Shown here: in pieces, positions 19,701 through 34,848 of the stretch | Layout: each line of letters opens with the position of its first letter | How positions within the stretch are numbered: the stretch's first letter is position 1 | From: Chrysemys picta bellii | Lineage: Eukaryota | Assembly: GCF_011386835.1 (NCBI RefSeq) | Contig: NC_088805.1 | Location: forward strand, 27,962,001-28,026,000 | Length of the DNA stretch: 64,000 nt | Reading direction: 5' to 3' | The notes under the pieces: model-generated | Databases searched by the model: none | Told to the model about the DNA's origin: nothing | What the model saw: the letters and a program-made list of their open reading frames with translations, nothing else | Program-made: the position numbers and the translations under genes

Positions 19701-22700
19701 TGCTAAAAATAAATTGCTGGTCTGCCTTAACTCTTAAATAACTAACTTCTGAAAAATAGAACAAAATTTTACTCCAATAGTTCCATTCTCTTCTTCTCAT
19801 GTCCTGTAACTGCTTCTCTGCAGGGCCTACATTTCAGGAAGTAGTTCACCAAAACATATTTTCCTGCAAGTTTTTTTTTTATTTTTTTTTTTACAACCAG
19901 TTTTTCTATTTTTATTTCCCAGTATTTGCCTGAGTCAGAACATTGTAATATATATGCAAAACATATTCTTATCTTGTTTCCTGTCTGATGGTTATCAGTG
20001 GGTTGTAAAAGTTCAGGCACACTAGGCAACATGCAAGAGCTGAAACTCTGTTAATTACATACCAGGACCACAAGTAAATTTCCCCCTATGAATTGTGGGC
20101 TTTGCTCTATTAATAGTGGGATTCCTGAATGATGTGCCATGGCAGCTTGAGGCATCACAAAATAACAGCAAGTAATTTTCAATAATTTTATTATAAAATA
20201 GTATTTTAGTTATGGGACAACTGACACTAGGGCAAATCTATTTTACGTTGCCACTGATCTTTAAAAGTGAATGATGGTTTCTTGCTAAGTGGATTTAAGT
20301 CATACTCTTTATAGTGGAATCACTTTAAATTCATGCTTCTTTTAAAAGTCATCTAAGATGCAGAGAATTTCTAGATGTCCAGCTATGTCCCAGAAAGCTC
20401 AGTGGGCATACTGCAATATGCATACTAATAACATCATACAATAACTGGGTGGTTGTTTTAATTAATACAAGAAATTGGTCTATTTGCCACAAGCACACTC
20501 TTCCATCAAACACCTTAGAATATTAAAATCCGTGTAATGTATATTCACTCCAGTACATTTACCTGTACAATAGGGACTGCACACAGGGCTACTCCAAAAC
20601 CCACTCCCACCATTTTGTTCCATGGGCCACTCAGTCCTGAGAAACAGCGTCTCCTAGCGTTAGCCAGAACAGGAAAACGTTGTCTGGGAACGAGAAACAA
20701 AGATAAGCACGCAGACAGCTGCACACTGGGAAATAAATATTCTGGAGGAGCAGAACACTTTGGGGGCAGAGACTTTTTTTTTTTCCACGCTATGTGTTTG
20801 CCTAGCACAGAGTCCTGCCCATGACTGGGTTTCTGACGCACTACCACAATACAAATAATACATTTGTTTGTTTTACAGTTAATTACCTAATCACAGTCTC
20901 AAGGAAAGATACAAGCTAAACAATTTGTGTATTGTAACTTCAGTAATAAGCTTATTGTCAGCAATTAATATAATTAACATGGATACAAAGCATTCAGATT
21001 AATAATAAAATACACTAACAGGGTCAAGTAAGCAGAACAGTAGGTTTATAATCAGAGGTCCTGAAACCAATACTTATGCACGTTTAACTTCATAGACAGG
21101 TAGTCAGTCCTATTGTAGTCAACGGGATTATGTCAATGTAAATGTGTGCTGCATCAGGGCCTTATTGTTGAACTAAAATAGTATGGTAGTGTATCAAATC
21201 ATAAGTGAAAAGCATCTATTCTCTCCCTCACTACATTTATATGGTTTGAAGGTCAGATTTCTGAGAATGCACGATCAGTTCATTTTATAACTCATTCTCA
21301 AATTGTGACCTGTGGAACAGTGGTGGTTTGCGGAAGGCCGGTTTATCATTTGCAGCAGCTAAATGGCATTAAAAGACAACTAAAACAAGCTACATTCTGT
21401 TTAATATCACTTCTCCTGATAAGCAATTGCTGTAGTTACTACAGCCATGTTATATGATCACAAATGAGAGGTGGTCCACGTAGCTGAAAAAAAGAGCAAG
21501 AATACCATCTTCATATTAAAATACAAAAATACTCAACTAAATGAACAGTGCAGTGAGAACTAAATGTATGAGCCAAGCCACCTCACTCTCACAAGTTCCC
21601 ACACAGAAGTCAATGAAACTTTTTGTATAAAGCAAACAATAATTGCTCACACTGTCTTTAGCACGTTACAGACTTAAAGGGCCCCTGCCAGATAATTTAG
21701 GCATAAACTTTAAAAATAATGATAATAGAAGTGATTATTACTTGTATTTATTATCCAAACAAAAACTGTTTTAGATTTAAACATTCTCCATAACTATTTA
21801 CAACTCAAACACTGCACTAGTTCATGGGAACCAATACATGAGACCGACTCTTAGCAAAAGTGAGAACAGCCTAATTTCACTATGTAAATTGAGGGAATTA
21901 TGAAAATGTAAACAGTGAAAATTAAGAGATTTAAAAATTAATTTCCCCCATATTTTTACTTAGCTGGGACTGCTTGTGTGCTTACAGTTAAGTACATGCA
22001 TAGGTGTTTGGAGGTTCACGGTATTAAGCAAACCAAATAAGGAGCCTAATCTGTTACAATGTGTTACTTTGATAAGAGTCAAGTTAACAGGCTGGTACAA
22101 CAGATAATGTTAGAAATAGTTTTCCATTTGGTTTAGACCAACTGCCAGCCTTGACCCATGCACTAACTGTGAAAATAAGTCCTGCAGGGACACGGGGGAG
22201 GGGTGTTGTAAAATAATTTTATTTTCAAACTTCAGAGTGTGTATCACGCAAAAAATGGGGCAGCCCAAAGTTCCTTTGTAGCCACTGTAAGGAGCAGCCC
22301 ATTCAAAATGGGTGAGTCCCAAAGGTCAGACCTTGCCAATGACCCTTTCATTGCTGTAGCCCTGGTTCGCCAAGGATCTCTAAGCGCGGGGCTCACCCCG
22401 CTTTACTAAGGGGAAACTGAGGCACGGAGGGGTGCGGTCAATGGCCTGAGGAGCTACGCAGCGGTCTCATGGGTTAGGCGGTAAGGGGTGTGGCGCGGTG
22501 GCGGAAGAGATCTCGGGGGCACCGGAGGTTTCCGAAGCGGGAGGAGACACTCGGGCTCACAGGCGGGGAGCGGGTCAGAGAGGAGGAGGCGGCGGCGGCC
22601 CGCCGGGAGGTTACACCGGAGTCTCAGGGGCGATCGGGGTCTAGGGCGGAGCTCTCACGGGGGGGAGGGGGGAGGTTGCCAGGCGATACCTGAGCAGGGC

Positions 22701-22742
22701 GGAGCAGCACCGGAACCACCGGCTACGCACAGCGGCCGCCAT
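16504..22742 (-). CDS. DIABLO: DIABLO / Smac mitochondrial IAP antagonist, 242 aa, spliced
   Basis: complement(join(16504..16718,17759..17855,18019..18129,19463..19594,20563..20683,22690..22742)) = 729 nt. All introns are GT-AG and in phase. It encodes a presequence, the AVPI IAP-binding motif and C-terminal YLRED. Confidence 0.96.
17322..17509 (+). mobile_element. Tc1/mariner (Tigger-like) MITE in DIABLO intron 5
   Basis: 22-bp TIRs cacctctacctcgatataacgc / gcgttatatcggggtagaggtg (1 mismatch), flanked by TA at 17320-17321 and 17510-17511. Confidence 0.9.
17759..17855 (-). CDS. DIABLO: DIABLO exon 5 ([32 protein letters not shown])
   Basis: 97 nt, AG/GT bounded. Confidence 0.95.
18019..18129 (-). 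CDS. DIABLO: DIABLO exon 4 ([37 protein letters not shown])
   Basis: 111 nt, AG/GT bounded. Confidence 0.95.
19463..19594 (-). CDS. DIABLO: DIABLO exon 3 ([44 protein letters not shown])
   Basis: 132 nt, AG/GT bounded. Confidence 0.95.
20563..20683 (-). CDS. DIABLO: DIABLO exon 2 ([40 protein letters not shown])
   Basis: 121 nt, acceptor ttctcgttcccag, donor gtaaat; contains AVPI. Confidence 0.93.
22690..22742 (-). CDS. DIABLO: DIABLO exon 1 coding part ([18 protein letters not shown])
   Basis: GAGATGGCG start, 53 nt ending in phase 2, donor gtatcg; lies inside a CpG island. Confidence 0.9.
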
Positions 22743-23011
22743 CTCCTCGGGACTAGAGCAGGGCGGCGGCGCGCCGGAAGTGACGCAACACCCGCCCCCA
22801 GAGGCGTGGGGCTCCGCCTCCTAGAGACTCGCCCTGCCCTTAGCGGCGCAGCCGCAGTGGTCTGGCCAGCCGGGGGAGGGGAGCGGAGCCGCTGAGCGCT
22901 GCTAATAACGGGGAGGGGGGGGTGTGTCTCCAGAGTCCAGCCCCGCCCCTCGGAGGGAGGGGGAGGAGCGGGGACCCGAAGTGCTCAGGGGAGGAGGCGG
23001 AGAAGAGGCAG

Positions 23012-23160
23012 GGCGGGGGCGGGGACTGGGGGGCAGGAGGTGGGGCCGGGAGGCGGGGGCGGGGACTGGGGGGGCAGGGGGTGGGGGTGGGGCCGCGAGG
23101 CGGGGGCGGGGACTGGGGGGCAGGAGGCGGGGGCGGGGACTGGGGGGCCGGGAGGCGGGG
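23012..23160 (+). repeat. G-rich minisatellite, four copies of GGCGGGGGCGGGGACTGGGGGG
   Basis: Units start at about 23012, 23052, 23099 and 23126, with variable spacers. Confidence 0.85.
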
Positions 23161-23384
23161 CCGAGCACCCACCCGGCAGAGGGGAAGCCGGCGCCTGTGC
23201 CCCCAGTTTGAGAGCAGCCGCTGATAGTTATTGCGAGTCGGGCCTGTCTGCACCTGCCTGACCGTCATTTCCTCTAGACCCTGTCGCCCTAGGTTGCTTT
23301 CAGCCTGTCCTGTGAACTGTGTCAAAATCCGGCTCCCCCATGTCCCGCTTCCCCTCTAGCCGCTAGCCCGGTAACCCTTCGGAG

Positions 23385-24155
23385 AAGGGAGGTTGGTTTG
23401 CCATGATTTGTTCTTGTTACATACATGCTGGCTATTACTTGGAACCCTGTTATCCTGTAGGTGCTTACAAATGGATTGTTTAATAATTTGTTCCAGGTAT
23501 CGAAATTCGCCTGTCAGGGCTAGCGTTCCCGAGGTCGTCTTTGTCCCTGGTTTGAAAGATCGGTACGCTGGCCTCCTCCAGTCCTCTGGCACCTCACTCT
23601 TCCTGCGTGCCTTTTCAAAGATCATTGCTACAAGCTCCAAGCTTGCTTCAGCTAGTTTCTTAAGTACTTAGCTGTCTTCACTAGCTCTAACTTATCTTAA
23701 TCTTAATTATGGTAAGTGTCTGGGCACAATTAACATTTTTCATGAAGACTGAAGCAAAAGAGGCATTAAACTCCTCAGCCTTCTTCATGTCATCTGTTAT
23801 TTGCTCGTCTTTTCTGCTTAGTAGAGCACCTACACGGTCTCTTGTGCCTAATGTAGTTAGAGACCCGCTTCTTCCTGTCTTTTATGTCTCTTGCTAGGTG
23901 TAACTAATTTGTGCTGTTCTGATTTTGCCAATACGTGTTTGTGCTGTTGATTTGTACTCAGCAATTTGTCCATGTTTTCACTTTTTGTAGGATGCCGTTT
24001 TGATTTTTAGGTCATTAAAGAACTAATGGAGTCATATTGGCCTCTTACTAGTCTGCCTAGCTCTCCTTCACATTGGGATAGTTTGCTGTTGTGCCTTTAA
24101 TATTATCTCATTGAGAAATTGTCAATGCGTCTGAACTTTTTCCCTTATGGTTTGG
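23385..24155 (-). pseudogene. Degenerate internal CR1 ORF2 fragment
   Basis: The minus-strand translation IFEKARRKSEVPEDWRR...EQIIKQSICKHLQDNRV.SNSQH resembles the CR1 pre-RT region. It is frameshifted and has no 3' tail. Confidence 0.75.
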
Positions 24156-26928
24156 TTTGATAACTACTATTTCTCCTGTCTATGCTGCCCTCTTGGTATT
24201 CTTGCAAATAGATCTGTTCCCCCCCCCCCTTTTCTTTTTTGTCAAGCTGGATTGATGCCATAAAAATGAGTTAGTAGGAATCAACACAAACAAGAGGCCA
24301 TCTTTCTTTCAAAAGGGAAATAACTTAGTCTTGCTCATCTGATTTAAAGTATACATATATGTAAAGAGCATTTAGAGGTTGAAATGGATAGCACAAATGT
24401 GGAATCTTGTCTGTACAAGTAAAAAGTAGTGACAGGAATCGCAGGAGTAGAATGTGCTCCTAAATCAGATTTGTTCTGTGTGCCCACCAGGTTTGTAGCA
24501 GAACTAAGCCCTAAGAAAGTAGATAAACATTCTATTAGCATGGTAAGGATTATATTTAAGTCTGTCTCCTTAGATGTGACCATTCTTTGACTCTGTTTTT
24601 AATGCAGTTCAGTGGACTATGCTTAGCACTTGATGCAAAACCTCCCAGTGACTTCAGTGGGCTTTGGCTCAGGCCCTTGTTGCTTAATCTTACTTGTGTT
24701 CATTCACAGCGTCAATGCACACATGCTGGAATATAATGATCTTGAACTCACTTTTCTGTGCCACATAAGGGCTTGCAGACTTAGGCATTAGTGTGAATTT
24801 TGCCTGGTAATTTCTTAATGGGGCTCTTTCTAATAACTTCCTTAATTTCTTTACATTATAGGCGCAGCTGTATCCTTTGCTGGTTTTCCATTTTAAAACT
24901 CATTCTACAATGAGCAGCTTTTCTTGTTCCTTTCTGACATTTAATCTATAATTATCCCACACAAACACCTATTGATTTTAATGGGGCTACTTTGCTATTT
25001 ATAAAGTCAAGTGACTACATTTGTTCTTGGGAGTGACGTTGCTAGTCTTTAAGTAATGAACAATTTGAATGATCTGAAATCAAAGATAGGAGTGAAACTT
25101 TGTAAATTAGCTGGACAAACTTTTTACTAGTGGCTTCTAAAAGTTTTAAAATATTCTATTTAGTTTTTATTCAGTTATTGTCATGGGCATCAACAGATGA
25201 CACTGATCACTATTTTAGAAGGGTGTAGTATAAATACATTCTGAGGGAAAAATAATTTTCCCCTATGTCATAAATATTCTTAGTTATAGGGCACAACATG
25301 CCAAGTGTCACTGTATGACCAAATATCCACAGACTTCTGATTACATTAAAAAGAATAGGGACTGTGAAATAGATGTGTGTGTGTGTGGGGTAATTTCTTT
25401 AATTCAAATGACTTTTGTACTCACTTTAATTTTTCTAGCATTTTTGTACAGAAAGACATTTTAAGTGGCATAAAACGAGGCTTGAATGAGCTAGAAGCAG
25501 ATTTCGCTAACATGACATCAGCTCAGTGGACTGCCTTGTGACACAAACCAAGAGAGAAATCACTTGCGCACTAGGACCCTGATCCTGCAGACTTATGTAC
25601 ATGCTAAAGTTTGCGCACCGTGAATAGTCTCAGACTCCCTTTGAAGTCAGTGGGGCTATTCATAGTGTAAAACATCTAAGCCTTTGCAGGCCTGAGACCA
25701 CAATGTTGAGGTCAGTAAAACAACATCTGTGTTTTGTTGTAACACTGCAATTGGTGTAAACTTTGGTATCCAGAACCACACCATGTGGTTGCCCACATTT
25801 TACTGGTCATATGTATTTTTAACCATTCTGTAGGCTCATTTTCAACCCAGTAGTTTGCAGTTATTAAAATGTTTGTTAGAAGTTGGAAACGTGCCATGTA
25901 GGTCCTGGAAGTTAAGAGAGAGGTTTTGTTTTTCTTTCTAAAAATCATAGAATTATTTGAACAAACTCCCATAGACACTTGTCCTTTTTACACTTCTGTC
26001 TTCTGAAATAAAAGCATAAGAAATCAATTCAGCATGTTTGAGATTTAGGGTTGATTTATACTGACTTCAATGGAGCGATGCTGATTTACCAGGTACCGCT
26101 GTTTAGACTTACCACTATTTTAAGATGAACAGTTCTGACCCATAGAAATTACAGAAAATCCTAGCAGGTCATTTTATTCCCTCTCTCCCAGGAACAGGTT
26201 AGTTGCACAGGATATTTTTAGTGCTTTCTTATTCAGCATGGTCCCAGTAAAACTCTCCCCTTGCTGGTTTAAACTCTTCTAAATATGCTAATATCACGGT
26301 CTGATGGGAAAGGCTGGGAAACTTAACCCAAAACTGGCACCATCAGATAAAAATGTGGAAACAGAAAGAGAGGAGACACGTGGGTTATGCTGATTTGAGG
26401 GAAGCACGTCCAGGACTGAATAAGAGGATCAGAAATAAAAAGTTAAGCATCTCTCTGCCTTCACCTCCATAACAAGGCTGATTGAAGCAGACATGTCTGG
26501 ACTTGATTGCTCAGAGGCCAGCTCACACTCTAATGGTTCTGCACCACTTCTGGGTTTTCTCCCTCCCTTTCATCCACCACCCTCAACAAGCTGCTATTCT
26601 CAGGAGTGATGTCAAAAAGGAGAAGATTGATCAGAAGACAAAATTGCCAGCAATCTTTCTGATCCTTCAGGCATGGAGCAGAGTTGAGCCCAAAGATTGA
26701 GTCTGGAAGAGCCACTGGGGGTCAGCAAGGTGTTTTTTAATCATTTTTTGTTTTACATAAGAAAATAAGATTGTATTTAGCCAATAATAAAACAAAGACT
26801 TGCAAAGTTTGTGGAGCCAAAAGGAACTGACATTCTATTTGTTGAGCAGACGCCAGCTGCAGGGTACTTGGTGGTGACTGTTGCACATTCTGGACTAGTC
26901 TGTAGCCAGAGAAGATAGAGGGGAGCTG

Positions 26929-27063
26929 TCACTTAAGCACCAAAAAGTAAGTTGTCCAGCCAGCCAGGAGCAGTGCTCCAATCAGCACCGTGTAACTGAA
27001 CAGCACGAAGGCCAGGAGCTCCTTCAGCACTTTCAGGAAGTGGACAGCGAAGGACTCCTGCAT
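26929..27063 (-). CDS. Putative 44-aa transmembrane microprotein MQESFAVHFLKVLKELLAFVLFSYTVLIGALLLAGWTTYFLVLK
   Basis: ACCATG Kozak context; 33 of 44 codons end in G/C in an AT-rich neighbourhood; a long hydrophobic C-terminal segment; a strong acceptor tttatttctcttcctttcag 77 nt upstream; no upstream ATG in that exon; an in-frame upstream stop. Confidence 0.75.
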   Translation of the reverse strand: MQESFAVHFLKVLKELLAFVLFSYTVLIGALLLAGWTTYFLVLK

Positions 27064-28430
27064 GGTTCGTCCAAGCACCACAAGCCAGATGGGATTTCTG
27101 CGGTTGTCTCACACTCTGCTCCGCACTAAAGTATCCTGATCTGAAAGGAAGAGAAATAAAGGGGAGGATGAGCCATTCTGAGCAGGCAGTTGCAGAGCTG
27201 AGGGAGAGCCTGCTAATTGCATGTAGAAAAGTCTGGATTCAGGTAGCTTCTGGTGGTGGTGTATAAACAAAGTCTGTGGACACTATAGTTTGTCAGAAGC
27301 TTTTTAATTGCCAGGGGAGAGTGTAAGGCCGGGACAGTGGTTGTATATTTGGAAAGTCTTTTTCAGAGTTTTCAGGATGTGTAGTGCTGAAAGGAGCTGC
27401 AGGAGCTGATCACAAACCAGGTTAAGACAGGGGTGGGGTGAGAGAATGGAAGAACCAAGCAAGGTTAAAAATATATGTGGGTGGACTAGGGCAGGGGCAG
27501 GCAGTTGAGGTCCCAGTCAGTTCCAGGAATTATTCCCTTCTGTCAGTTGATATGTGGCTGGCGAGCTTTGTATTTAGAGCATTCGCCGATGGTGCATTAG
27601 TACCAACAAAAAGCTCTAATCAAAGTGGTCAATTTCTCCAGAGAAGCCACTGTTAATATTTAATGTTATAATTGCTTCTAATGGACAGACGGGCACAGAA
27701 CAGGCTTTTTGTTTCGGATCAGGGGAAGATTTGGGATTAAAGATAAATTTATTTATCTGAAAGCTTCATAACTCCTGTTAAAATAACCTTTTTTTAAAGG
27801 GGAAAGGATAAGATGTTTTAAACTTCTTTCCTCCCCAGTTAAATATATATTTGTGCATTGCCCAATCAGTTGCCACCAGTTAGTGAACTTTGTGTAAAAT
27901 CTCAACATAATTGCAATAGCTGTTTGCTACTTAGGCTTTTAAGATGTAAGGACAGATATGTAAGGAATCCTATTCCCATCTCCACTTGCATGTTCACTGA
28001 CCCTTCATCAGAAAATTACCAGAGCAAAAAGATTTGTACCTTTGTATGCATGACCAAAAGGAAAATGAAACTAGGTTTAGGATAATACTAACCAAAAAGG
28101 ATTATTTTTCTTCCAAATAGTATACCTCCAGTTGGAGCAAACTGAATTCCATCCTACCACTTAACGAAAGAGTGATTAATTAGAAACATGAAGTGAAATC
28201 TAAACAGCAGCTTTCAAATATATATATTTTGTTTTAAATTTTTTTTAAACTCCCCACACCCCACGCTATGGTCAGGTGTATTAATGTGTTATGGAAAATA
28301 CTGCAAATTAACAAAAATTCTGTTAGATGTAGTTTTTCAGAGTATGGAAGTTATTTACTAACCAACGTTTTACATCATTCTCATTATAGAACAAAACATA
28401 TGTTGACAAAGAGATACATAAATGGCTTAC

Positions 28431-28710
28431 CGTGGGATAGATGACTGGATTTACTTCTTAAAGTTTCTGTTTCTATCTGCTTTTGTTCTGCAGCTTTCTC
28501 TTGAATTTCTGGCTTCTAAAAGGTTGGTGCTGTAGTTTGATCCCCTTCTGGTCTGCTAATCCGAAGAGTCAGGAGTAATGAGGTTGTATTTACAGCCTGC
28601 ACCAGTACTAATGGACTAGGTGTGGTCAGAGACCAATTATTATATCTGACATAGACCCTTTGCTTTCTCTGTGCTGACAGCACAACAGTACAGAACAATC
28701 CAACCATTGG
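28431..28710 (-). promoter_or_regulatory. Candidate promoter and non-coding exon 1 of the microprotein gene
   Basis: On the minus strand: CCAAT (28706-28710), TATAATAA (about 28637-28644), an ATG-free stretch of about 180 nt, then donor ACG|gtaagc at 28431/28430. Confidence 0.35.
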
Positions 28711-30384
28711 TATTGCCATAAATCCTAGGGAGATTTTTGATGTGAACAATATATTGTATATTTTAAAATGCGTTAAACTCCCCGCCTCCCAGCTATGTCA
28801 TCTAACACTGCTTTTGTAAATGTCCTTATTTTTTCTACATCACATCTTAGGCTCATCTGCTTCCTCTTATTTCACCAGTTTCCCATGTTTTTGGAGACTT
28901 TATTGTGCATATTCTGCTTTTTGTATAATTTTCTGCTCTTAACAGCCCTGTTCTCACAGAGGGACCATTAAAGAAGGAGGAGGATGATACTGGAGTGGAA
29001 CTGGTGAATCTCTTAAGATCAATTGGACATGACCAGATGGATGCCTGTAGATCTAGTTAGGCCCTGTTATCAAAAGTGATGGATGAAGATCGGCTTATCT
29101 CTGCAATATCACCAGTCCAGTTCTGTACATACTGTATTTCACATATCCACACCACAGAATCTCTGCCTCTGAGAGAGAGACTGCTTGGTTTTTTAAATGA
29201 CAGAAAAAATGTCAAGATGTCAGTCTAGTCTCAGTGAATTGGTTACTAATAATCCTATTTAAAAGGTAAAGGTTGTTTGGGTTGGCTTTTAAACAACCAG
29301 ACATATATGCAGCTCAGAGCAGCAAGAGCATCTCCTGCAAAGCAAATCTCTTACCTACTGAGACATTATGCTCTAGCAAATGGCCTCTTAATTTAATCAG
29401 GATTTCTTGTTATCAAATTATTACCCCGTGGTCAGAAAGACCTTAGCTAGAAGGGAACATAAACAAGCTCAGGAAGCTTATTAAGAAGTAATTGCTCCCC
29501 GGGAGATGTGGTCAACTCCAGGCTTTGTTTCTTGTTGTTTCTAGGAAGAGACCCTGTAGCTGCTGGGTCTGTGTAACTGTCAGTCTAGCTGCTAGTTGTG
29601 ATGTCCCTTCAGAAATGCTATGCTGACACACAGTGCTCTTTCTGGCCAAAGTTGAAGTTCAATTTGATACGCAGGTTAAAAATATTTTCTTAGGAAACAA
29701 GTCCAGTTACTAACTAGTTAGTACAAATGAAAAAGGTAAATAATCTAGCACTTCTTGTTTAACTATTTATGCTATTACCTTTTACATTTCACTTGGCTTG
29801 GCTAGTAAAACCAGATTAGTCAGTTTTAGTCTTCTCTCTCCTCAGTTTTGTTCTCTCTGTCTCAGGCAGTATCAAAATGATGCAGTATTACAGGAGAAAA
29901 TGTATATCCAAATGAAAGAAAAGTCCATTTAAATAATAAAATGATGAAATTCTATTGAGGAACTGTCAATTTGATTTTTTTTAATCACTAAACCTAACCT
30001 CACTGTTGTCACTTTATACTCAAATATACTAGCAAAGATAAACTATAAATGTGTTTGTATATGGTTAAAAGTGTAAGGCAAAGAAGTTTGCAGTGGTGCA
30101 ATATGTAATTCTTTATGGCTTGATTTTCAAAGGTGCTGAGTATTGATTCCAATACTTTGGGAAATCAGCCCACTATTCTGTAATACGATATAAGGCATCA
30201 CTGTGACAGCTGCTTTATTATTGGGGAGCTCATGCATACCTGAGGTAAGAACAATCAAGTGATAAGTTTCCCGTTCAGGTTTTTTTACATACTTTAAAAA
30301 GTCAAATGTTCCTTGAAATTAAATACTTACCAAAGAAATAAAAATGTGAAATATGAGTATATTACTAGTATGGAAGAAAGCTAG

Positions 30385-31062
30385 GGGCAGGTCTACACTA
30401 CAGCCAGGATCAACGCTCTGAGATCGATCCATTGGCAGTCAATTCAGTGGGTCTAGTAAAGACCCACCAAATTGACTGCAGATCGCTTTCCAGTCGATCC
30501 TGTACTCTACCCCCCCAACGAGAAGAGTAAGGTAAGTAGACAGGAGATTTTCTCCCGTCTGCCCCCCGCGGTGTAGACCCCGTGGTAACTCGACCTAAGG
30601 TACGTCGACTCCAGCTACATTATTCACGCAACTGGAGTTGCATAGCGTAGGTTGACTTACTGCAGTAGTGTAGACATAGCCAAGATCTTGGCTAAGCAGT
30701 TTCACAGATTTTTCTCCCATCAACCACCGGGGTGTAGACCCCACCGTAACTCGACCTAAAGTACGTTGACTCCAGCTACGTTATTCACGTAGTTCGACTC
30801 ACTGTAGTAGTCGAGCTACATGAATATCATAGCTGGAGTCAATGTACCTTAGGTCGAGTTACCGTGGGGTCTACACCCTGGGGGGTTGACGGGAGAAAAA
30901 TCTCCCATTGGCTTACCTTACTCTTCTTGTCAGGCGTAGAGTACAGGCGTCGACTGGAAAGTGATCTTCAGTCGATTTGGTGGGTCTTTACTAGACCCAC
31001 TAACTCTACCACCGGTGGACTGATCTCAGAGCGTTGATCCCGGCTGTAGTGTAGACCTGCCC
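30385..31062. mobile_element. Fold-back composite of PIF/Harbinger-like non-autonomous elements
   Basis: Complete copy 30385-30681 (gggcaggtctacact...agtgtagacatagcc), direct partial copy at about 30706-30809, and inverted copy 30819-31062 ending agtgtagacctgccc. Confidence 0.8.
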
Positions 31063-32072
31063 TTAGTAAAGTCGTCTGTTTCTGCTTGAAGAATACATGC
31101 ACTAAAGGGAGGATTTGGTTAAATATTAGGGTTTGTTTCACAAATGTTCACTGAACAATTTAAAATAAGCAAATGTAGCAGAACATAGAATGTTCATCTA
31201 AAAGACAAGGCTTGTGATTAGATCCCAATTCAACAAGAAATTGAGACTATTTAAAGGATTAACAAGACTATAACTATGGGGTTGGAGACAGGTACGTGCC
31301 CCATGAAAGAGGGTGAATTCTAAAGCAGGAGACATTGTTAAGGCAAGAGTATCTTCTGAAAATGGCTCCCGTTTTTTGGTCATTTTAATAGTTTGGAATT
31401 TTCAGAAGAGTTAAGGGAGGTTGATTTTAAACATTCTTCTGATATTTATTTTACAAGGTTTATTTACCATCCCTCTCTTTCAAAAGGAAAGAGCTTCCCC
31501 TCTGTTGAACTGGACTACATCTTGGGCTTGAGCCTGCAAGGTGCCATGTCTAGCAAAGCACGCAGGCATGTACTTAACTTTAGGCAGAGGCTGTAGTACC
31601 CCTGAAATCAATGAGACTAAGTACATGTTTAAAGTTAAATCTGGGTTTAAGTGCTTTGCTGTGTCAGGCAAATGTGCTCAGCACATGGTGGGAATAAGCC
31701 TGTTCTAAAGTGCTGCATGTTTGGCCAGATTTCTGGGCCAAGCTATTAAAATCACTCCAAATCTGAATGAATTTCCAGTAAAATGCTCTGCTATTTTTCC
31801 AGTTAAAGCAGCAGCAAATGTAGTTGGGCACAAAGGGTATGATGGTGAGCTTGAAAGAAACACCTGGATATTCTTAAGAGAGAGACTGGTTTGAACTTGA
31901 CCTCCAGCTGCATTAGTAACACGGGAATACGGCTCATTATGAATTCAGGGACGCTAGGTGAATCACCGAGGAGAATTAATCCAGCTCCCCTAAACTCAGG
32001 GGGTGTCAAGCACCCTCTGCGCTTGAAATGGGGGCTGACGCTACTCAGCACTTCTCAAGTAGGATGCCTAGT

Positions 32073-33115
32073 GCAGTGTTTCTCACACGTGGCCACTATG
32101 GGCTTGGCTTGCGGCCACAGCCTCCTGGGCAGTGATGGGGGGGTGCAAAGCAGTGGTCCCTCCCACAGGGCCACGAGGTTGGACCCTGCTCCCCTCTGGA
32201 GAGACAAATGCTGGAGGAGCAGACAGCTAGTGGGTTCCCCACCTTCCTGGGGACCAGTGGTGGCCAACCTGCAGCCCGCAGGCTGCACATGGCCCCTCAG
32301 GATAATCCACTGGCAGGCCGCAAGACAGTTGGTTTACATTGACCGTCTGCAGGCACAGCTCCCAGTGGCCCTGGTCCTCCCTCAGACAATGCAGCCCTTT
32401 CACAGCTTTGAAACAGAGTAGCCAGCGCTGGCGATGATGCAGGAGGCAGAATGGAATCCAGCTCAGATGGTCTCGCGGCCAGTCCGCAGCTTACCCTGAT
32501 GGGCTATGTGCAGGCTGCAGGTTGCCCACCACTGCTGGGGACGGTAGGATCAAGGTCCAGCTGTGGGCAGCAGGCTCTGGCCATGGGGCTCCAACCCCCC
32601 TCTGCGGGGCTCGCCTTCCTAGTGCCCCTACCAGCCCATTATGTCCATCCCCCCTCCCTCCCCCATTCCAGCACTTGCCCCCTACTGACCTCCCCATCTA
32701 AGGCTTAATTTTTCCCCAGGCTTGCCAGGCCTGAGTAAGTCTGCTGCTGTGAAAAGTGATATCAGTATGTTTGTTAATAACACTTTTCACAGCAGCAGAC
32801 TTACTCGCTAGCAAGTCTTTAAAAACGCAAACAACAAAGCAAAAGAAACAACAAAAAAGCCCAGAACCCACACAGCACCTTCTTTGGGTTTCTATTTGGT
32901 TTAGGGCCAGTAAAGAATAGTGACAACTACATTATTTTTATTATTGAGGCTGCAAAAAGATTCAGTAAATTACAATGATTTGGATATGTGTATGTGCCTA
33001 TTTAGGAAAAATAAATAAGTTAATGAAATAGTTTAGGAAAAATTTGTCAGTGCGGCCACCAGCATGCGTTCGTAGCCTCCCTCTGAGGCCACCAAAAAAT
33101 GTATTGTGAGAACCC
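32073..33115 (+). mobile_element. hAT (Charlie-like) non-autonomous element
   Basis: Begins cagtgtttctc and ends tgagaacccc. The GC-rich left arm explains the spurious ORFs at 31891-32708. Confidence 0.55.
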
Positions 33116-33298
33116 CGGCCTCCTGCATTACAAGGGCTCTAAAGGAGCATGAGTTTGTCAGCTTCTTCTTGTTAATCAGTCCTTGGTGGTTAGGAGATAA
33201 CAAATGAGTATAGAAACACTAGCTGGCCTCTAACCTGTGCTGTTGTTTAAGCAGATACACAGTCCTATACAGTACAGAATCATTGCATACAACTGTGT

Positions 33299-33427
33299 AT
33301 GCAGCCGAAGAAGTGGGCTGTAGCCCACGAAAGCTTATGCTCTAATAAATTTGTTAGTCTCTAAGGTGCCACAAGTCCTCCTGTTCTTTTTGCGGATACA
33401 GACTAACACGGCTGCTACTCTGAAACC
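33299..33427 (+). mobile_element. 129-bp Penelope-like tail insertion consisting of the hammerhead-like motif and terminus
   Basis: Near-identical to 6356-6482. Flanked by tacaactgtgt (33288-33298) and tacaattgtgt (33428-33438). Confidence 0.85.
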
Positions 33428-33836
33428 TACAATTGTGTTGTATCTTTTTCTCTTTTACTGCTCACATGGGCTGGAGGCTTCCAGCAGCCCCTGTGTCATT
33501 ATTTACTATGGATTTACATACTTATTGCAGCTTACTGGCTGTGGGCATTGCAATAGCTCTTCAGGTAACAGGGAGCTTTCTAGAACCTTGTATGTAAGGA
33601 CAAACTAAAGGGAAAGAGGCTGTATTTGAGGAATGTAAGTGACTTCTACTGCTGAGGCTCTCCCTGTGTTTTTATTATTAGTTTACAAACCCAGCTGTTT
33701 TATTCTAGGAGGGCATTGATGACATAGCCAGAAAAAACAGATTCAGTGTGTACAGTGCAAGCTACTGCTACAATAGCTAGGCAAAGGGACCTGGGCAATG
33801 GAAGAAAGAAGCCAGAGACTATCATTCCCTCTAAAG

Positions 33837-34057
33837 CAGTGGCTCTCAAACTTTTTTTTAGTGGTGACCCCTTTCACATAGCAAGCCTCTGAGTGCGACC
33901 CCCCCCATATTAACTAAATCACTTTTTAATATATTTAACACTATTATAAATGCCAGAGGCAAAGCAGGGTTTGGGGAGAAGGTTGACACCTTGTGACCCC
34001 CCTGTCATAACCTCACACCCCCCTGAGGGGTCCCAGTCCCCAGTTTGAGAACCCCTG
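33837..34057 (+). mobile_element. hAT-type MITE
   Basis: Termini cagtggctctcaaact / agtttgagaacccctg. The flanks ctctaaag / tgataaag look like a decayed 8-bp TSD. Confidence 0.7.
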
Positions 34058-34654: not shown

Positions 34655-34848
34655 CTAAAAAGGTGGGGGCTCCAGTTTCTCCATCAGGGATTTGATCCAG
34701 TTTGTGCCATTGATTAGTTTAGTGGTGGCAATGACATATTCTGTGCCTCCGTCTTCCATCTGAGAAAGAAACCTCAGTGCAGCAATTTCAGCGTACGTCA
34801 CGCCTCCCAGAAAGAACACCAAAGTTACTCTGTTTTCTCCCTGTTGAC
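34655..34848 (-). CDS. VPS33A: VPS33A exon 13 ([28 protein letters not shown]...MEKLEPPPF*)
   Basis: Acceptor tgttcag; TAG at 34655-34657. Confidence 0.95.

Follow-up and report, generated by a model that had tools for sequence, protein, structure and literature searches.

The minus strand of the Chrysemys picta bellii genome carries, between VPS33A and DIABLO, an open reading frame of only 44 codons, and the locus raises the question of whether such a short frame is a gene, what kind of protein it would encode and how it is related to the DIABLO gene next to it. The whole stretch of DNA that was analysed, referred to as the window, is 64,000 nucleotides of contig NC_088805.1 (27,962,001 to 28,026,000 of the forward strand), and positions are those of the window unless another sequence is named. 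Our results indicate that the frame is almost certainly a real coding gene. The best overall explanation, which we consider likely, is a vertebrate microprotein gene whose product would be a tail-anchor-like helix packed within the membrane as a subunit or regulator.

The reading frame and its transcript in the turtle

The coding sequence occupies 26929-27063 on the minus strand, and its translation is exactly the peptide of the original prediction, 44 codons followed by TGA. An in-frame TGA at 27111-27109 upstream makes the ATG at 27063 the earliest possible start in that frame, and the start context, originally given as ACCATG, reads CGAACCATGC with an A at -3. The composition ascribed to the frame was likewise recovered: 33 of the 44 codons end in G or C (GC3 = 0.75), and in these AT-rich surroundings the GC content is 0.51-0.52 over the frame versus roughly 0.31-0.47 in most segments within about 3 kb. 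The peptide is composed of an N-terminal segment (residues 1-15), an uncharged helix (residues 16-43) and a single Lys, residue 44, which ends it. The amphipathic character claimed for the N-terminus was found as a Kyte-Doolittle moment of 1.53 per residue over residues 4-15.

An open reading frame of this length alone is not significant, as 109 frames of at least 35 aa overlap the 14 kb from 20000 to 34000 and the overlapping +1 frame (26933-27112, 59 aa) is open too. These two facts would favour a chance open frame, lying in a non-coding RNA or a transposon fragment. The frame stands above chance because of its splicing, its first-AUG position, its 55 orthologs, its conserved gene order and its coding pattern of substitution. 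The +1 frame, open in all species, shows no conservation of its sequence and was set aside as a by-product of composition. A search of Rfam over 20000-34000 gave zero matches.

Fourteen small sequencing runs, judged to be RNA, contain 56-82% of the words sampled from 26700-27400. Contigs from four runs of four different studies were placed on 23650-29649 of the window; as assembled contigs, they show the splice and the extent of transcription and not the true 5' and 3' ends. The joint between 27140 and 28431 was present in all four runs, skipping 1290 nt of the minus strand with GT..AG borders. The intron (27141-28430, minus strand) begins with GTAAGC and ends with TTTCAG, the donor reading CCCACG/GTAAGC and the acceptor ttcctttcag/ATCAGG (acceptor at 27150-27141). 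On its upstream side is a non-coding exon 1 without ATG, about 212 nt in its short form (28431-28642, minus strand; contigs of runs X3 and X11), and on its downstream side the terminal exon 2 (26716-27140, minus strand), which is made of 77 nt of 5'UTR, the coding sequence and about 213 nt of 3'UTR. An ATTAAA polyadenylation signal is found at 26736-26741 on the same strand (mRNA position 612), 17-20 nt ahead of 26716 and 26719, where the contigs end. Run X3 gave a single contig of 634 nt (26719-27140 plus 28431-28642), and the contig pieces were 26716-27140 plus 28431-28557 in run X5 and 26935-27140 plus 28431-28640 in run X11. The two-exon mRNA is about 0.64 kb long (a 637-nt model), and its first ATG, at position 290, opens the 44-codon frame. 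RNA coverage of 26929-27140, the interval in which the prediction had expected a transcript, is provided by spliced contigs in which the frame begins at the first AUG. In the turtle, expression of the frame is from a two-exon mRNA of its own, which terminates shortly after ATTAAA.

In run X1, one contig (26748-27141) spans exon 2 without a listed joint, another (28431-29204) carries the splice together with an extended exon 1, and a separate one covers 29247-29649 and beyond. A longer 5' form exists, as seen in X1 and in a lizard contig, and the short 212-nt first exon is not the sole form. A conserved block at 29331-29515 (minus strand), detected by blastn of the lizard RNA contig (L026) against the window, turtles and birds, is about 0.7-0.9 kb upstream of the short exon 1 and is common to turtles, two birds and the lizard RNA contig. 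Since RNA contigs cover this block in X1, an alternative, longer 5' exon is indicated, or else upstream read-through.

Other non-coding stretches of the locus were compared as well. Exon 1 has a 19-nt core, TCTCTGACCACACCTAGTC (28614-28632, minus strand), which is also present in the lizard RNA contig, and a CCAAT motif is located about 65 nt upstream of the contig start of exon 1. When the flanks were compared side by side, a 24-nt element of the 3'UTR, ACAATCTTATTTTCTTATGTAAAA (26751-26774, minus strand), was identical in turtles and two birds (L012 and L025); it sits just before ATTAAA, and the remaining 3'UTR has diverged. A regulatory protein or a microRNA may bind to this element. Further downstream, at 24642-24678, many unrelated RNA contigs attach in every one of the four runs, their ends loose on both sides, in the manner of an interspersed repeat, and the 'joint' from 24665 to 25634 (side 20) is probably a repeat artefact.

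Orthologs, selection and gene order

With the peptide as query, 55 related proteins were found (E values of 1.5e-18 to 1e-9) in turtles, lizards, snakes, birds, a frog, salamanders, the platypus, marsupials, many placentals and a salmonid. Many of them bear the name 'uncharacterized LOC128125816 homolog', and in Peromyscus the ortholog is called 'Predicted gene, 49027'. When 1.84 billion cluster representatives were searched with a profile, 36 matches were obtained, all with E<=1e-10 and none between 1e-10 and 1e-3, and this gap in the E values indicates that the family is compact, without detectable remote relatives; further named members are from piranha, a goodeid fish and a tree frog. The turtle protein is 75-100% identical to named 'LOC128125816 homolog' proteins (E values of 1e-9 to 1e-18) and has the hallmark of the group, namely a length of about 44 aa and 30 C-terminal residues that fit the consensus (...GALLLAGWTTYF..K at the end). 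These alignments make it orthologous to human ENSG00000284934 / LOC128125816 and mouse ENSMUSG00000114278, and the tentative suggestion, made with the prediction, that mammalian annotations have a little-studied gene model here was correct. One protein of 428 aa (P0068) shares the 90% cluster of P0047 with a 49-aa char microprotein; by eye it resembles an aminoacyl-tRNA synthetase, and it was rejected from the family as mis-clustered, apparently a clustering artefact.

The gene is already known and annotated, this genome included. The novelty that the prediction had implied does not hold, because the gene has been annotated since 2019 and the window protein (P0064) is already present in NCBI, UniRef and Logan. 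Mudge et al. (2019, Genome Res 29:2073; PMC6886504, supplementary table) first listed the human ORF as ENSG00000284934 / ENST00000475784, an 'uncharacterised protein' of 44 aa at chr12:122226430-122226564 on the minus strand. The same source places the human and mouse ORF in a 5'UTR exon of DIABLO, co-transcribed with DIABLO, and gives a CAGE signal for the human ORF in neuroblastoma, embryonic and neonatal neurons and adrenal (PMC6886504). No functional paper on this gene was found in the literature searched, and a search by Ensembl id gave one incidental listing. Another human gene model, ENSG00000256861, presumably lies near VPS33A and DIABLO. This gene (AC048338.1), described as a 'paralog of VPS33A', was down-regulated in the subgenual anterior cingulate cortex in three psychiatric diagnoses (PMC8134494). 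What the present analysis adds is modest: turtle and lizard have an independent two-exon transcript, the constraint is quantified, and neither a remote homolog nor a sequence match among solved structures was found for the protein. With about 30 residues nearly invariant across bony vertebrates, the protein is among the most strongly conserved vertebrate microproteins without an assigned function.

The family alignment contains 21 invariant positions and 7 more with a conservation of 90% or higher, nearly all in residues 15-44; the last 30 residues hardly change between teleosts and mammals. Pairwise dN/dS (NG86, 11 species), on which the original prediction could be checked, was 0.01-0.24 over the whole ORF and 0.01-0.07 over codons 15-44, the dS of these pairs being often near or beyond saturation. 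Between the turtle and a mammal there are 21.5 synonymous and 11.5 non-synonymous differences overall, and 16 and 1 in codons 15-44; among distant turtles, 2-7 synonymous changes and zero non-synonymous ones were counted. The variable columns are distributed over codon positions 1, 2 and 3 as 18:11:38, and each of the two remaining frames either contains stops or is open yet unconserved. Identity to three distant turtles is 96.3% in the coding sequence, 92.5% in exon 1, 85-87% in the UTRs of exon 2 and 75-79% in the intron and flanks, with the steps in conservation falling on the exon boundaries. On the sequence evidence, the peptide itself is under strong purifying selection. Orthology, gene order and the pattern of codon positions are all contrary to a chance open frame. 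No second copy of the ORF was found in any genomic locus fetched, which also speaks against a transposon fragment, and syntenic orthologs under purifying selection were found. The probability of a chance frame is therefore close to nil in our judgement.

The locus in assembly GCA_011386835.2 (L010) is 100% identical to the window, and the genes called there are a Sec1-family gene (VPS33A) upstream and Smac_DIABLO downstream, on the same strand. The predicted position between the two neighbours was borne out: the C-terminal coding exon of VPS33A ends at 34655 and the start codon of DIABLO is at 22742, inside a CpG island (22300-23350), both on the minus strand. The microprotein coding sequence follows the VPS33A stop at a distance of 7.6 kb and precedes the DIABLO start codon by 4.2 kb. 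VPS33A, the ORF and DIABLO are on one strand in 10 of the 11 turtle assemblies, with about 4.2-6 kb from the ORF stop to the DIABLO start; turtle locus L007 shows the ORF and DIABLO about 6.1 kb apart, VPS33A being beyond the fetched stretch. The same three genes are on one strand in a bustard (about 1 kb to the DIABLO start) and in rabbit and hare (about 360-390 nt), and the tailed frog locus has the ORF and DIABLO (about 8.4 kb), with VPS33A again beyond the fetched stretch. Every tetrapod locus that shows both neighbours has the order VPS33A-ORF-DIABLO on one strand, as the check for conserved synteny had called for. In the Arctic char, VPS33A, the ORF and an EMP24/GP25L gene are on one strand and no DIABLO is found downstream, and in this single teleost locus the VPS33A linkage reaches further back than the DIABLO linkage.

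Some local features of these loci were also recorded. In rabbit, an annotated gene of 218 aa without a Pfam domain (L014:6223-10020, minus) is on the strand opposite to the ORF and overlaps its first 20 nt; this gene model may be spurious. Upstream of the char ORF there is a 1.97-kb insertion compared with another teleost (L013:7918-9887), flanked by inverted repeats CAGTGCATT... / ...AATGCACTG and TA, which from its sequence looks like a Tc1/mariner-type DNA transposon. About 600 nt past the ORF stop, a teleost contig (L032:1104-1170) matches L013:13555-13621, just upstream of the char EMP24/GP25L gene; the matched segment sits 3 kb further from the ORF in char, a difference that may stem from splicing, a deletion or an assembly artefact.

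The relation to DIABLO

The lizard RNA contig (L026) and its unspliced counterpart (L027) part exactly at an acceptor reading ...ctcttgcag, 52 nt before the ATG, and what lies upstream of this point in L026 aligns to turtle exon 1, the acceptor being homologous to that of the turtle. The two-exon layout is confirmed in turtle and lizard. In bird, frog and char, plausible acceptors were seen, by eye only, 50-80 nt upstream of the start codon. Bird contigs L028-L030 were discarded as evidence of splicing, as they are colinear with the bird genomes and uninformative. Teleost contigs L031-L036 were at first sight spliced when compared with the char genome, but the 1.97-kb 'intron' is the char transposon insertion, and these contigs are colinear with genomic DNA and give no evidence of a fish transcript.

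The situation in mammals is different. A polyadenylated RNA contig of one mammal (L018) covers without interruption at least 150 nt in front of the ORF, the ORF itself and the sequence that leads into DIABLO exon 1, and then continues, spliced, through the complete DIABLO reading frame of 239 codons; this contig spans two genes and by itself is no proof of one molecule. Its bases 1-147 were considered as an upstream spliced exon and rejected, since the join lies within a MIR-like repeat and is a probable assembly chimera. L018 agrees with the arrangement of the human ORF and DIABLO given by Mudge et al. 2019 (PMC6886504). The members of the ENSG00000284934 group resemble the turtle gene in most respects: the human protein has 44 aa too and a single coding exon, the mammalian orthologs are 75-80% identical to the turtle protein and near-identical over the last 30 residues, and the rabbit and hare loci have the same order and strand of VPS33A, ORF and DIABLO. 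However, the human and mouse ORF is in a 5'UTR exon of DIABLO, whereas the turtle ORF is 4.2 kb upstream of the DIABLO start codon and, unlike in the human and mouse description, possesses a non-coding first exon, a 1290-nt intron and an ATTAAA signal of its own.

Co-transcription with DIABLO was not seen in the turtle, where the contigs end at 26716-26719 after ATTAAA, about 3.4 kb short of the DIABLO CpG island. No contig of any of the four runs covers 25850-26449, and although contigs cannot prove absence, there is thus no sign of a transcript that runs on into DIABLO. This lack of co-transcription is a difference in gene structure and has no bearing on orthology. Because the ORF has its own mRNA in both turtle and lizard, co-transcription with DIABLO looks like a derived state on the mammalian side. 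These data suggest that the independent gene is the older arrangement and that the mammalian bicistronic form arose by shrinkage of the spacer. With its own promoter-proximal exon, intron and poly(A) signal, the ORF of turtle and lizard constitutes an independent gene, more than a leader ORF of DIABLO. For experiments in mammals, edits of the ORF need a design that spares the DIABLO transcripts.

The arrangement in mammals gives rise to the view that the ORF is only a regulatory uORF that controls the translation of DIABLO, its peptide being irrelevant. The mammalian ORF is about 390 nt (rabbit) to about 490 nt (another mammal) upstream of the DIABLO start codon and can share an RNA with the DIABLO coding sequence, in keeping with such a role. 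But the low dN/dS of codons 15-44 (0.01-0.07), with synonymous sites near saturation, places the constraint at the level of amino acids. In the turtle, a separate mRNA terminates shortly after ATTAAA, the lizard RNA contig is without the DIABLO coding sequence, and the char has no DIABLO downstream at all. A purely regulatory uORF is in our opinion very improbable.

A second view, in which the neighbourhood of DIABLO reflects a shared regulation of apoptosis, makes the product a mitochondrial membrane microprotein working with DIABLO, either tail-anchored in the outer membrane or in the inner membrane. In all tetrapods examined, the ORF immediately precedes DIABLO on the same strand, the two coding sequences are carried by the polyadenylated RNA contig of one mammal and co-transcribed in human and mouse according to the literature (PMC6886504), and the modelled layout of the peptide resembles a tail anchor. 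Adjacency alone, however, is weak evidence of common function. The turtle mRNA stops before the CpG island with the interval 25850-26449 uncovered, and the downstream neighbour in char is the EMP24/GP25L gene with VPS33A still upstream. The uncharged stretch of the peptide is also long (25-28 residues), with one basic residue after it. We consider a mitochondrial partner of DIABLO unlikely.

The predicted helix and known small membrane proteins

AlphaFold2, run with the family alignment, gave one helix over residues 2-43 with a mean pLDDT of 89, and the product is predicted to be one continuous alpha-helix. The short amphipathic segment (1-15) would be followed by an uncharged transmembrane stretch of 25-28 residues that ends one Lys before the C-terminus. 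Residues 16-43 have a Kyte-Doolittle mean of 2.07, a best 19-residue window of 2.49 and a moment of 0.20. The layout is that of a tail anchor, with a single hydrophobic helix at the extreme C-terminus and only K44 beyond it, and a tail-anchor-like membrane helix is a probable reading of this sequence. RNA, orthology, gene order, purifying selection and the AlphaFold2 helix all agree with the original claim of a real single-pass or tail-anchored micropeptide.

In a protein of 44 residues, the hydrophobic segment would still be inside the ribosome at termination. From this length we infer a post-translational, tail-anchor-style insertion, with the N-terminus in the cytosol and essentially no lumenal tail; to judge from the length only, insertion might proceed via GET/TRC40, EMC or a related route. 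Tail anchors of the outer mitochondrial membrane less typically have such a long uncharged stretch with a single basic residue. On this basis, the ER or a post-ER membrane seems a somewhat better candidate than the mitochondrial outer membrane.

The pattern of conservation around the helix bears on how the peptide may act. S23, Y24, L27, A30, L31, A34, G35, W36, T37, T38 and Y39 are invariant or nearly so, and the variable positions of the helix are 18, 22, 28, 41 and 43. The variability moment points to one face with a ratio of only 0.25, which is modest because almost nothing in the helix varies; the variable positions would thus lean weakly to one side, the other faces being invariant. Such near-total conservation around the helix suggests that it is packed against another protein, as a small subunit or a regulator. 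The peptide would most likely not be free but work inside the membrane, tightly packed against a conserved membrane protein or complex as its subunit or regulator, and from the sequence we slightly favour an action by intramembrane binding to a specific partner. A homodimer prediction with two copies scored 0.08 against a mark of 0.32 and carries no weight either way. A more tentative proposal, which we put forward as possible and no stronger, has two separate parts: the microprotein could be an obligatory single-helix subunit of a conserved vertebrate membrane machine (candidates are a transporter, a channel or a vesicle complex, in neuronal and adrenal lineages), and the ancestral gene could have been an independent two-exon gene, its mammalian bicistronic form being a secondary merger by shrinkage of the intergenic spacer.

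Searches for known relatives of the protein gave zero Pfam matches at E<=10 and zero matches in a profile search of solved-structure sequences at E<=10. In the ESM Atlas feature search the best scores were 0.82-0.85, under the meaningful level of 0.9, with no structural entry. These results bear directly on the SERCA regulins, to whose size class the original prediction had assigned the peptide. By analogy with phospholamban, sarcolipin, myoregulin and DWORF, it would bind the transmembrane groove of a P-type ATPase and tune the pump. The size class is the same, and so is the modelled layout, in which a C-terminal single-pass helix comes after a short cytosolic segment; the invariant faces of the helix suggest helix-helix packing. 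However, solved structures include phospholamban and sarcolipin, and at E<=10 the microprotein matches no solved-structure sequence and no Pfam family. The transmembrane Asn of these regulins (N34 of phospholamban and N11 of sarcolipin) contacts SERCA and is important for inhibition, but the peptide is without Asn: this residue is absent from the turtle protein and from all of the 24-sequence family alignment, and it was found in one of 48 distinct 44-residue cores, at position 38. The expression described in the literature is in neuroblastoma, embryonic neurons and adrenal, not in muscle. A specific kinship with the regulins is not supported, and a regulin-type pump regulator seems improbable to us.

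Compared with the regulins as a group (phospholamban, sarcolipin, myoregulin, endoregulin, another-regulin and DWORF), the microprotein is alike in size, C-terminal helix and short cytosolic N-terminus, and by analogy it would probably also act through helix-helix packing in the membrane. It differs in having no detectable sequence relationship to them and no transmembrane Asn, and in its mammalian expression, which is neuronal and adrenal and not muscular. It is also much more strongly conserved than most regulins. A further comparison is offered by very small tail-anchored or single-pass subunits of membrane machines, such as Sec61 beta and gamma, OST4, TMEM258 and small respiratory or translocase subunits. 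The microprotein is without homology to any of these and without a match to the chain sequences of solved structures, and it would be a putative member of a complex. Like these subunits it would be a tiny helix, its length implies a post-translational insertion, and the conservation of the whole circumference of its helix is the pattern expected of a buried subunit.
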